DNA from: Orbicella franksi
Taxonomy: Eukaryota
Reading direction: 5' to 3'
NCBI GenBank assembly: GCA_964199315.1
Contig: OZ116700.1
Span: forward strand, 9,300,001-9,364,000
Length of the DNA stretch: 64,000 nucleotides
Positions 34,750 to 55,583 of the stretch are shown one piece after another. A program made the position numbers and the translations under genes. How positions within the stretch are numbered: position 1 is the stretch's first letter; every line of letters begins with the position of its first letter. The notes beneath the pieces are model-generated. The model did no database searches and was not told where the DNA came from. It saw only the letters and a list, made by a program, of their open reading frames with translations.

Positions 34750-37700
34750 TCAAAGCTGGGACTTTGGAAGGCCTTTCACGACTTCTAGCGCTTCTTTGAA
34801 AAGTCGCAAGAACATGTCCACATTCTCCGGGTGCGAGTTGTGTCCCATGAATCCTACTCGCCATACCTGAGGAGTGAGAGAAAGCAGGTTAGTAACTACA
34901 ATACCCCCTCCATTAGGAATAGCTACCTTTTGCCGACATCATACGGGGTATAATGCTTTGGCCCAGAACTCGGAAAATACGCCGGCACGGGTTTGAAGCG
35001 GTACTTGAAGATATCTCTTGGATTATTTTCGCAATCAAACTTCACAACTAGTAAAGTAGCGACCGTGGAATTTCCTCTGATACCCATACAACTGCAAGGG
35101 GTAGAAATCTGATCAAAGTAGCACTTATTGGAATAGCCTGGGCGTCAATTTGAAGGAGGGCGCTTCTTGGAATAGGCTCAGTGCTCACTTAAGCGGCATG
35201 TGTGTAGCAGAAATGCAGAGTATGCACTGGGTAAACTGAATACTTCATATATTCTGCATCCGATCCATATATCAATCATATCTAAGTACATCACCTTTCC
35301 AACTGTAGGACCAATACCTCCTACAAGTTCAACCTTGTGCCTAGTGAATAAAAACACCACGCCTTTACCTTTTTGTTCACTTGCTCAAGAAAAAAAAAGG
35401 AATTACCAGAAATACAGGAGGCAGCGTGGCCGAGTGGCTAGGGCGCCGGACTTGAAATCCGGAGGTCGCGGGTTCAAGTCCCGCTCTGACCACTAAGCTG
35501 GAGTTGTTTCTCGGTAGACCCTTGTTAAGCTTCTCGGTCATGTTTGTAAATAGCCAAATGGTCTGCCTCCCGCCAGTTGGGATTTTTAAGCCTATTATGG
35601 TTAGTTGATATATTTGTTTCTTTCAGTTTAAGTGGCATGCCTGTGAACTAGCTAGGTGTAGCTAAGCGCATTGACCACTACAAACAACAACATTTGAACA
35701 TTTTTCGAACGAAATCCACCCACAGTGACTACTAAAAGCGACTAGTGAACGCTACATGCGGGACAGCAGTAATTTTTCATGCGACGGTAGTTCAGAAGGA
35801 AGAATGAGAGAAACCAAGTGACTTTTCCTCCCAGGTTAGTGACTTGTGAGATATTCCCAGGTATACCACGAGAAACCATTGAATAACAAGTATAAATGTA
35901 TTCTGTATTTCTCTTTGAAGACACGCTTTTAAAAAAAAAAAATTGTTCAAAACAATTTTCTTTATCTGTACGAAGTGTCTCATGTATGAGGTTCCTTATT
36001 AACATCCACTTAGAAAGCAGGACCTATCTGTTAAAAAAATCTTGTTTCCAGAAGAATATACTTAACCAATATATATGCCAGTTCATACACGGGTTATTGC
36101 ACACCTTTTCATGAGATATTGTGGGACAGCCTTCCAATCTGGTAATCCTTCAGGAATGAGAATACTTGTGACTGTTGGAAGACGTAGAGCCTATGTCACA
36201 GAGAGAAAAGAAATAGAAATTAATTCATATATGAATCAATGAAAGAAAAAAAAACAAAAAAAAACAGAAAGAAAGATATGCATCACAATTAAATAAGCTA
36301 ATTATGACTACCCCTACAATCGGCGACAAAATTGTTGACATATCGATCGACCCTTTTAATCCCCTATTTCGTCACTGCGATCCCTTTTTGCCCTCCTAGG
36401 TTGTCCTTTCAGCCCTCTCCCCCCCAAACAATGTTGTGTGGCAATTGCTGTGACCTTGAGCTACAAACAAGCACCATTGAATGAGCGAGCGGGGTCTTTT
36501 CCACAGTTTATTGCGCGATATAAAGAGTGGTGTTATTTGGTGCACTAACAGTACTATTGAAAGACAATGTGTCATCTAATTATGTCGCCCATTGTAGCTT
36601 TTTCTTTTTCTTTTTTCTTTTTGTTTTTTTTTGAAGACTTGACCTTTTGGAAAATCAAGTCGACTAAAAAAATGTATAATTCAATGAGAACTTTACATAC
36701 CTTATCTTTAACAAACATCCTTAGTCCCATCCTTTCAATCCCAGTCCAGAGATGTTCAATAGTTTTACGATGTCTTTTCCATGAATTCTCAAGTCCCTAA
36801 TGAACAGATGTCAAAGCTGAGGTTATAAGTCACAGTGTTAATTTTACCTTTTGTACTTACTGAGGGACTTGATAATTTTGGCAAGATCTTATTAAGTTCC
36901 CCTTAGCTACTAGGTCTAGTAAAACAAGTACCAGACACCTGTTTTTGGCATTCTTGCAAACATGTTAACGACTTCAATGTTATGACCAGCTTATTATTAA
37001 GCAATAGACCACAAATTTTTATGGTTTGTAGGCTGATAAACCACGTGGGATGTTGGAAGAATTCTTAAATCACGAGCCGCAGGCGAGTGATTTACGATTC
37101 TTCGACTGCAATCTACAATCTGCAACATGCAATCAACCAAGCCCATAGCTTGTGCAGAGGACTTTGTGGCTGTAGTCCTTCCCACACATACAGCTGTACA
37201 ACCCATGATACAAGTGAATATAAAACAGATCTTAACTTTGAACTGCGGATCCTGTGCTCTGAGGAAAGCTGGAGCAAAAAGGAACGAGCCAAGATAGTAA
37301 AATAGCAGAACAGGTACTGAATGCGTGCAGAGTAGTATTTGCAAACTAAGGCTTTGACTGTGTTGTGTGCTTATCATACTAGTACCTCCTCAGCTATCTG
37401 TGCCAGGCTTTCTCTCAAAGCATAAACCAGACTTACTGCTCCTGTGTGGTGATATCTAAACAGAAACAGTAATTAGGTTTAACACATTTAATTTATACCC
37501 AAAATTAACGATCATATGCCAATATTATAAAAGGTAGGCCTTTTGCAACAGTTGGTGAGGTGACTGATAATTTCTAAACTTTTAGCTACAGTTATATGAA
37601 TTTCAGAACTGGAAAGATCACGGTTTAAATAGCCAGAGCACCAATTTTCAAACCACTGCCCTTTAGTGTAAGTTTAAGATGAAATGACGATTTAAATTAT

Positions 37701-54600: not shown

Positions 54601-55583
54601 CTGAGAAAGTTTGGTGTTACCATAGAAATGCAATGGAGATCCCCTTCACCCACGGATGTAGGGTAGGAGGGAAACTTGATTGCTTTATAACGATTTATCA
54701 TTAACTGTGCAGTTTATAATTTCTCCGTGGGGCGCTTGTTGATGTTTCGCTAGGCTGAGAGCGCTCGTCCCCTCGAATGTATTAAACGTGAAACGTGTCA
54801 TCGCTAGTAGTGCAATAGGAATCTGACAGTGGAGAGGACTTCAGGATGTAGTGTACGATGTTATGTATAGTACAAAGTTCGAAAGAAAAAGAAACTTTGG
54901 ATAATTTCCATTGTAATTGTTTGCGCATCTGGAAATGTGCATTCAGGTTGGGGAGATCGCGCGCCAAAGTATCCAGACTACGGGATGACGCTAGTGTGTA
55001 AATTTGGCACGTTGACAGCCATTCATGAGCAATCTTTAAAATTTAGAAGAAATATGCAAGGACTTCACAGAATATCATGGATGAATTCACGTTAAAAGTG
55101 CCATTTTCATGCTGATTTCTGATTCTTACCTTGCCGCTCGGCAATTTCGCGAGCCCTCGAACCCCACATTCCATTAACACACACTAGAATGCGTTCTCCT
55201 CGTTCGACAAGGTTCATGATCGAAGCTTCCATCGCCGCATGTCCCGCTCCAGTGATAGCGAGAGTGTAGTCGTTATTCGTCTGAAACACGTACTTCAGAC
55301 CTGCCTTCGTTTCGTCCATTATGTGATGAAAATCCGCCTGCAGATGGCCCAGAAGCGACATCGCAGAAGCGTTGTATATCCTCATCGATGGATTCGAAGG
55401 GCCAGGCCCAAAAAGAAGCTTCGTGGGCACTGTCAGAGGCACCAGCAATTCTTCCGGTGGTGGAACTTTCGGTTTCCATTCCTCTGCCAACTTGGCTGTG
55501 GCTGTCGAAAGCGCCCTTAATTCGAATCGGAGAGGCCCTCGAGCCGCAACTCCAAAAAGTCTAGCAAATTTCGTAAGGCTCAT
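48623..55583 (-). CDS. AGXT: Alanine-glyoxylate/serine-pyruvate aminotransferase, paralog M (predicted mitochondrial), 424 aa. Exons 55583-55130, 54053-53989, 53451-53351, 53077-52922, 51745-51650, 51560-51491, 51178-51083, 49862-49777, 49141-49096, 48727-48623
   Basis: Ten GT-AG exons (454, 65, 101, 156, 96, 70, 96, 86, 46, 105 nt), same intron positions as paralog P, continuous 1275-nt frame, SGSQKC PLP lysine. N-terminal [33 protein letters not shown]; ends ...EDVQRRS*. Confidence 0.95.
49475..49651. mobile_element. pogo/Tigger-like MITE, TA target duplication
   Basis: ta|cagtagaatcctgatt ... aatcgggattccactg|ta. Confidence 0.8.
50510..50981. mobile_element. TIR element carrying a nested pogo-like MITE at 50712-50890
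   Basis: Outer arms gaagcgtacccctcaagattacat and atgtaatcttgaggggcacacttc. Inner ta|cagtgaaactcc...ggagtttcactg|ta. Confidence 0.75.
51773..52429. mobile_element. Kolobok-like non-autonomous element, ~25 bp from the AGXT-M exon-5 acceptor
   Basis: ttaa|ggacattc ... gtacgtcc|ttat (degenerate TSD). Confidence 0.55.

Follow-up and report, generated by a model that had tools for sequence, protein, structure and literature searches.

The 64,000-nucleotide stretch of the Orbicella franksi genome considered here (contig OZ116700.1, positions 9,300,001 to 9,364,000 of the forward strand; hereafter the window) carries two intact paralogs of AGXT, the gene for the glyoxylate-detoxifying enzyme alanine:glyoxylate (serine:pyruvate) aminotransferase, both on the minus strand, head to tail, with 10 exons each. 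We call them M and P, for the mitochondrial-type and peroxisomal-type enzymes they are predicted to encode, and ask how the signals that would direct an enzyme to these two organelles are distributed between them. The gene models were obtained by comparing the stop-to-stop fragments of the minus strand, which gave two collinear sets of ten AGXT-like exons; exon boundaries were read by hand and the coding sequences were then assembled. In this hand-built model, paralog M spans 48623..55583 and encodes 424 amino acids, from an ATG at 55583 to a stop at 48625-48623, with exons 1-5 at 55583-55130, 54053-53989, 53451-53351, 53077-52922 and 51745-51650, and exons 6-10 at 51560-51491, 51178-51083, 49862-49777, 49141-49096 and 48727-48623 (stop included). 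Paralog P, modeled likewise, spans 34750..44595 and encodes 396 amino acids, from an ATG at 44595 to a stop at 34752-34750, with exons 1-5 at 44595-44238, 42035-41971, 41420-41320, 39797-39642 and 38431-38336, and exons 6-10 at 37455-37386, 36796-36701, 36190-36105, 35340-35295 and 34866-34750 (stop included). The boundaries are GT-AG at 18/18 introns, and the intron phases are the same in M and P. An earlier, sequence-only reading of this DNA had proposed tandem AGXT duplicates here, with M ending in QRRS and P starting with MAEWK and ending in KSQL, and on each of these points the models agree with it, the two genes being matched by RefSeq orthologs as well.

Both genes are, in fact, already annotated in public databases. 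Namely, the M model differs by 1 amino acid from XP_020624089.1 and the P model by 3 amino acids from XP_020624090.1, two RefSeq proteins of Orbicella faveolata with consecutive accessions that come from one contig. M is also backed by a Logan contig of 2.4 kb, whose open reading frame (ORF; P0380) is 424 amino acids long and agrees with M in its N- and C-terminal stretches. The automatic names of the RefSeq proteins should be read with care: the P-type protein (P0462, that is, XP_020624090.1) is called 'serine--pyruvate aminotransferase, mitochondrial-like' although it has no presequence, and the copy that does have one is named merely '-like'. A tblastn search found no further AGXT pieces in the window, and exon 1, searched against all 497 Mb of the assembly, returned only the M and P copies.

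Among solved structures, those of human AGT (4CBS, 1H0C and 3R9A) are the closest to the M protein (E of 1e-133 to 1e-134), the identity to human AGT being approximately 50%. The Pfam family PF00266 (Aminotran_5) is matched at 148.5 bits by P0151, which differs from the M model by 1 amino acid, and at 140.7 bits by a P-type ortholog (P0163); single exons of the window reach 20-21 bits, just below the cut-off of 21.5, as is expected of fragments. In an alignment with human AGT, the residues G82, H83, W108, S158, D183, Q208, K209, Y260, T263 and R360 are identical in M and P. The two paralogs are 81% identical to each other, with a synonymous divergence (dS) of about 0.6 and a ratio of nonsynonymous to synonymous divergence (dN/dS) of 0.16-0.18; the duplication is old, and both copies are under purifying selection. 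Together with ORFs that are intact over 10 exons, canonical splice sites, RNA contigs of both genes from independent studies and orthologs of both that are kept in several coral families, this selection speaks against one copy being in decay or non-functional, with the terminal differences reflecting neutral erosion. It is true that the P-type did not appear among the full-length matches before its cluster, of which a fragment is the representative, had been opened, and that an out-of-frame upstream ATG opens a frame overlapping the P start. That said, a pseudogene was rejected on the grounds of the intact ORFs, the RNA contigs and the purifying selection, and decay of either copy is, in our view, largely refuted and extremely improbable.

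The two copies have not changed at the same pace, the P-type evolving approximately 2 times faster than the M-type. In the Tajima test, the window pair shows 18 (M) vs 36 (P) unique changes (p=0.014), and the pair of Stylophora 15 (M) vs 38 (P) (p=0.0016); fixed lineage-specific changes number 11 in the P-type vs 1 in the M-type. One can argue from this imbalance that P has taken on a new function, such as a shifted substrate preference or another role, with the targeting difference being only secondary. The mosquito enzyme 3-hydroxykynurenine transaminase (HKT; 2CH1) would then be the model to follow, and its match to the coral protein does score no lower than that of human AGT. Mosquito AGT and HKT are, like M and P, duplicated enzymes of the AGXT family in an invertebrate, HKT (2CH1) being as close as human AGT, and they differ in substrate use, not in targeting. 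The coral paralogs, unlike them, keep identical active-site residues at all positions checked; moreover, dN/dS is low (0.17), and the fixed P-specific changes that are listed are mostly conservative. A new function for P therefore strikes us as improbable.

At its N-terminus, M carries a presequence at 55488..55583 (minus strand), comprising 31 codons followed by Leu32 (TTG, 55490-55488), precisely where P-type genes, as well as coral genes with both signals on one protein (dual-signal genes, discussed below), have Met. Since the start Met of P aligns with this leucine, the M extension is 31-32 amino acids long; the sequence-only reading, which had described an Arg-rich extension of 33 amino acids, was right about its composition and slightly off about its length. 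Counted over 32 amino acids, the extension has a net charge of +5 and one acidic residue, and it is amphipathic, with a hydrophobic moment of 0.72 at residues 5-15 vs 0.41 for the first 32 amino acids of P. The cleavage-like motif R-A-L|S (R-3-type, R-x-L|S), which had also been pointed out before, was recovered by regular-expression match at R23. After the upstream ATG, the next in-frame Met of M is residue 67, which lies within the mature enzyme.

At the other end, M terminates in EDVQRRS, and what follows its stop is informative. Namely, a local alignment over 48605..48640 (minus strand), an interval comprising the premature stop (TAA, 48625-48623) and the beginning of the 3' untranslated region (UTR), recovers a relic of the final ...PKSQL-stop codons of P. 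The M sequence aligns here with the P codons CCA AAG TCC CAG CTT TGA with a score of 25 vs a maximum of 22 in 2000 shuffles (p<0.0005); small indels shift the frame in the relic, and the former Lys codon is now part of the TAA stop. The M gene of Stylophora has the same tail relic, in a more decayed form and with another stop. As M lacks both the internal Met and the tail, only the presequence-bearing form would be made from it. We also considered ways in which M might regain a peroxisomal targeting signal of type 1 (PTS1), the C-terminal kind. Readthrough of the stop codon would give ...SSGFENVTESSLV, without a PTS1, and one alternative frame ends in SKM, which is not the frame of the gene and which we treated as chance. 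No type 2 signal (PTS2) was seen in M by eye against the published pattern (PMC4690255). The 3'UTR of M, as covered by RNA contigs collinear with the genome, extends over 47626..48622 (minus strand), that is, at least approximately 1 kb.

P, which begins with MAEWKTK and ends with GLPKSQL, presents the opposite picture. Its N-terminus is without the features of a mitochondrial targeting signal that were found in M, and its start, MAEWK, lies in a strong Kozak context (AAGATGG). The P 5'UTR (44596..44736, minus strand) was delimited by a collinear RNA contig; it contains a TAA stop in the frame of P (44685-44683), and from there to the P start this frame has no ATG. The codons for the C-terminal K-S-Q-L, a PTS1-like tail by its sequence and by the tails of orthologs, occupy 34753..34764 (minus strand), with a basic residue, K, at position -4. 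A separate feature of the 5'UTR is an out-of-frame upstream ATG at 44623-44621, 28 nt before the P start and inside the part covered by RNA (one contig), which opens a 63-codon ORF (window 44432-44623, minus strand) overlapping the P start codon. This upstream ATG may modulate the translation of P. Its MLL.NP.. counterpart in a close relative (P0430) lies in frame.

In order to place the two termini in context, we compared them with those of other corals, full-length relatives having been found by aligning the window exons with distant homologs and by opening protein clusters. The gene of the complex clade has a conserved presequence, MS[VT]AKFAR..RALS.., followed by a Met exactly at the P start site (..KMAEWQ, ..KMADWE). 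The tails of such dual-signal genes are PKAQL in Acropora (three species) and Montipora (two species) and PKSQL in Porites lutea and P. harrisoni (gene g1), and a full-length Acropora mRNA contig (L004) has both signals on one transcript. M-type genes were found in Orbicella, Oculina, Pocillopora (three species) and Stylophora. All of them keep the presequence, have Leu in place of the internal Met and end early, in QRRS, KSRS, KNS or KNSS. The P-type genes end in KSQL (Orbicella), KSHL (Oculina) and KSQI (Pocillopora and Stylophora), the SHL of Oculina being a consensus PTS1. The reciprocal pattern that the sequence-only reading had proposed to look for among orthologs is thus present, with presequence and no tail in the M-types of four genera and PTS1-like tails in the P-types. 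What is more, the PTS1-like tail is kept in all genes that have the internal Met, with the exception of gene g2 of Porites. In other words, the internal start and the tail, both of which a short peroxisomal isoform would need, were lost together in the M-type and kept together elsewhere.

The exception belongs to a duplication of its own. Porites (P0404, P0405, P0206, P0423) has a later AGXT duplication in which g2 is nested within Porites sequences; the start of g2 is at the internal Met, and its SQP or FQP end is without the final Leu. Duplication of a dual-signal gene would thus have had a third outcome, possibly a cytosolic enzyme.

The M and P genes are neighbors in Orbicella and Stylophora, and in Pocillopora and Oculina a single contig contains both, under near-consecutive identifiers. 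In Stylophora pistillata (L003:10001-25717), the M and P orthologs face each other with their 3' ends (convergent), separated by a 208-amino-acid gene of no known family; the different orientation there and in the window is due to an inversion in one of the lineages. Protein trees, whether from the whole alignment or from the core only, recover an M clade (93/93), a P clade (100/100) and the complex-clade genes (96-99). Going by which corals have the two copies, the duplication is older than the divergence of Pocilloporidae from the group of Orbicella and Oculina, and it may be older even than the split between robust and complex corals.

Both M and P are transcribed, as evidenced by RNA contigs from independent studies. 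In particular, P exon 1 is contained in 12 RNA-labeled runs from several studies, the runs being labeled as coral. One P contig (X1) is collinear over 44320-44736 and thereby includes 141 nt 5' of the ATG, with the in-frame TAA; in another (X2), the match stops at the exon 1 donor and 195 nt follow that continue off the intron. For M, one contig (X1, 1595 nt) covers 47626-48725 and another (X2) covers 47911-48725 and exon 9, and the RNA contigs confirm both the intron 9 junction and the exon 8/9 junction of M. No variant was reported at the M stop codon in the RNA contigs. An alternative first or last exon restoring both signals to either gene would have undone the proposed division, as the sequence-only reading itself had recognized, and none was seen in them: the Logan contigs report no joint by which P would gain a further coding exon at its 5' side or M a different last exon.

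Taken together, we are modestly inclined to see in M and P a subfunctionalized AGXT pair, whose targeting signals would be split between a mitochondrial and a peroxisomal enzyme. Judging from its presequence, M is very probably mitochondrial, and P, judging from its tail, is probably, with appreciably less assurance, at least partly peroxisomal. The scenario would be the following. The ancestral scleractinian gene would have combined a presequence behind an upstream ATG, another in-frame ATG where the mature enzyme begins, and a weak PTS1-like PK[SA]QL tail, and would have been duplicated locally in the robust-coral lineage. Copy M would then have exchanged its internal Met for Leu and lost its tail through an indel and a premature stop, its product presumably being imported into mitochondria and cleaved near R23-S26. 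Copy P would have kept the tail and, in the Orbicella lineage, lost the upstream start along with the presequence, leaving only the short form, which PEX5 would import into peroxisomes through -KSQL, perhaps incompletely, so that a cytosolic fraction is possible. The elements of a duplication-degeneration-complementation history can be recognized here: unduplicated relatives with both sub-functions (Acropora, Montipora and Porites g1), complementary losses (the Met and the tail in M; the upstream ATG in the P of the window, where there is an in-frame stop), and retention of both copies by selection, as seen from dN/dS and from the orthologs in several families.

Several observations weigh against this subfunctionalized pair, or at least against its simplest form. 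Most directly, the SQL of P does not conform to the consensus [SAC][KRH][LM], having Q at position -2, and it has been called a weak PTS1 in zebrafish Crot (PMC8919083). Furthermore, the orthologs of the sea anemones Actinia and Nematostella end in AEK and AGK, respectively, without a PTS1, and a cytosolic short form is therefore a viable ancestral state. The P-type mRNA of Pocillopora (L013, 67-210) has, 47 codons before its MAEWQ, another ATG in the same frame, itself preceded by a stop, and the resulting 47-amino-acid extension is Arg-rich, with a net charge of +10 and zero acidic residues. In the 5'UTR of P, a search for a relic of the presequence gave as its best local alignment 17/19 nt, with AAG opposite the ATG of M, which is not significant (p=0.07) and was not relied on. 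In the trees, the branching among M, P and the complex-clade genes collapses to a trichotomy, and approximately unbiased (AU) tests reject none of the groupings M+P, M+Complexa and P+Complexa. Finally, Logan contigs show presence, not absence, such that rare alternative isoforms may escape them, and the raw RNA-seq runs (X23 and X24) contributed only 33-39 reads on either gene, mostly repeats, which leaves the Logan contigs alone as informative.

The first two of these points, along with the fact that the enzyme of Porites g2 is intact despite ending in SQP/FQP, can be read to mean that the split is one between mitochondria and cytosol, -KSQL being too weak for import and the tail being conserved for structural reasons. 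Amphibian AGT, for one, has been reported as cytosolic. That said, the tail varies only among the PTS1-compatible SQL, AQL, SQI and SHL, it has the basic residue at -4, and it has decayed exactly in those copies that lost the internal Met. In plants, moreover, SQL belongs to the verified PTS1s of low frequency (PMC9542071), and it also falls within animal PTS1 patterns (PMC4690255). For these reasons, we consider a purely cytosolic P unlikely, if by no means negligible, and continue to prefer a P that is directed, at least in part, to peroxisomes.

The extension in Pocillopora, on the other hand, concerns the order of events. Similar 'MG[RK]R..' extensions occur in the P-type of Stylophora, where the frame has likewise stayed open, and in two other fragment clusters, and the P-type of pocilloporids may, going by these extensions, still be dual-targeted. 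Among Orbicella-like fragments, P0426, P0428, P0429 and P0440 start at MAEWK, and P0427 and P0430 have upstream ORFs that are unrelated and non-basic. As far as these sequences indicate, the presequence was lost from P in a lineage-specific way, and the likely order is that the M-type became presequence-only early, with the P-type remaining potentially dual in pocilloporids and, in the Orbicella lineage, keeping the tail alone. That targeting signals were lost reciprocally once the gene had been duplicated, as put forward by the sequence-only reading, is in this lineage well supported by the dual-signal relatives, by an M that lost its Met and, with a visible relic, its tail, and by a P in the window that lost its presequence; the split was stepwise, not a single clean event.

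How does this compare with better-known systems? AGXT is a textbook case of an enzyme whose targeting has shifted between mitochondria and peroxisomes in evolution, with primary hyperoxaluria type 1 as the human disease of mistargeting, and human AGT itself uses a weak PTS1 tail. The coral genes belong to the same family as mammalian AGXT, with conserved catalytic residues, and the dual-signal coral genes share with it the upstream ATG with a presequence, the internal Met and the weak C-terminal PTS1. In the window, however, the signals are on two genes, not on alternative transcripts of one; the coral tail is SQL where human AGT has KKL (KKL or NKL in mammals), and the presequences are not alignable. 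A closer parallel is provided by zebrafish, in which Agxta has the weak PTS1 SRV and Agxtb an N-terminal mitochondrial targeting signal and no PTS1, localization having been deduced from sequence there, too (PMC8919083). As the same partition of signals between paralogs is seen in zebrafish, the coral pattern is not unprecedented. The vertebrate duplication is an independent one, however, and the coral pair differs from it in being a local, adjacent duplication with visible tail relics and with single-gene relatives that carry both signals. More generally, it is recognized for yeast that mitochondrial and peroxisomal isozymes can arise by gene duplication (PMC3798809). The yeast MDH1/2/3, IDP1/2/3 and CIT1/CIT2 are likewise isozymes split by duplication, but they are other enzymes, and their localizations are experimental, whereas the coral ones are predicted. 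Our literature searches found no paper on AGXT duplication in corals or cnidarians, and a 2026 paper on the retargeting of mammalian AGT (PMC12960970) has no passage on paralogs, 'gene duplication' appearing only in its reference list. In this sense, the coral pair adds a new and independent example to an evolutionary pattern that is already known, and one that can be read unusually well; the genes themselves had been annotated before.

Two further features of the window deserve mention. Between M and P, the intervals 46231-46791 and 47166-47539 consist of high-copy repeats with a very high summed depth of RNA contigs and many rearranged joints, and are probably transposon fragments. Elsewhere, the interval 18001-22000 is GC-rich (about 0.50), with a strong positive GC skew (about 0.3). 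Outside the window, the assembly contains at least 5 loci of the FMN-dependent 2-hydroxyacid (glycolate) oxidase family, at C4:5.24 Mb, C12:16.03 Mb, C2:21.07 and 21.09 Mb (a tandem) and C6:22.38 Mb; a DHDPS/HOGA1-like gene was represented by only one weak exon match, at C2:15.37 Mb, and no conclusion was drawn from either.

With regard to physiology, the sequence-only reading had suggested that separate regulation of two glyoxylate pools could matter in an animal that receives both prey collagen and algal glycolate. A benefit of regulating the two pools separately might follow if the localizations are as predicted, and the link to collagen and glycolate is speculative. Desmophyllum pertusum, in which a partial P-type gene was found, is azooxanthellate, and Oculina patagonica, which has the M/P pair, is facultatively symbiotic. 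The presence of the P-type in the former and of the pair in the latter therefore argues against a symbiosis-specific origin.

If the localizations hold, these corals would offer an invertebrate gene with a mammal-like design of two starts and a weak PTS1, as well as a lineage in which this design has been resolved into two dedicated genes, with relics that show the loss of each signal. What is more, the intermediate states in sister families would make the order and the mechanism of the partitioning testable. Tentatively, and with somewhat less than an even chance of being right, one could go further and suppose that the two-start, weak-PTS1 design is ancestral in hexacorals, or perhaps older, that robust corals keep a stepwise series of its resolution by duplication, and that Porites arrived independently at a different outcome. 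Were this true, corals would lend themselves to the study of how dual targeting becomes divided between genes, and there might be links to the way they deal with glyoxylate and oxalate. The finding says nothing by itself about symbiosis; where it would be relevant is the handling of glyoxylate and oxalate in calcifying animals.

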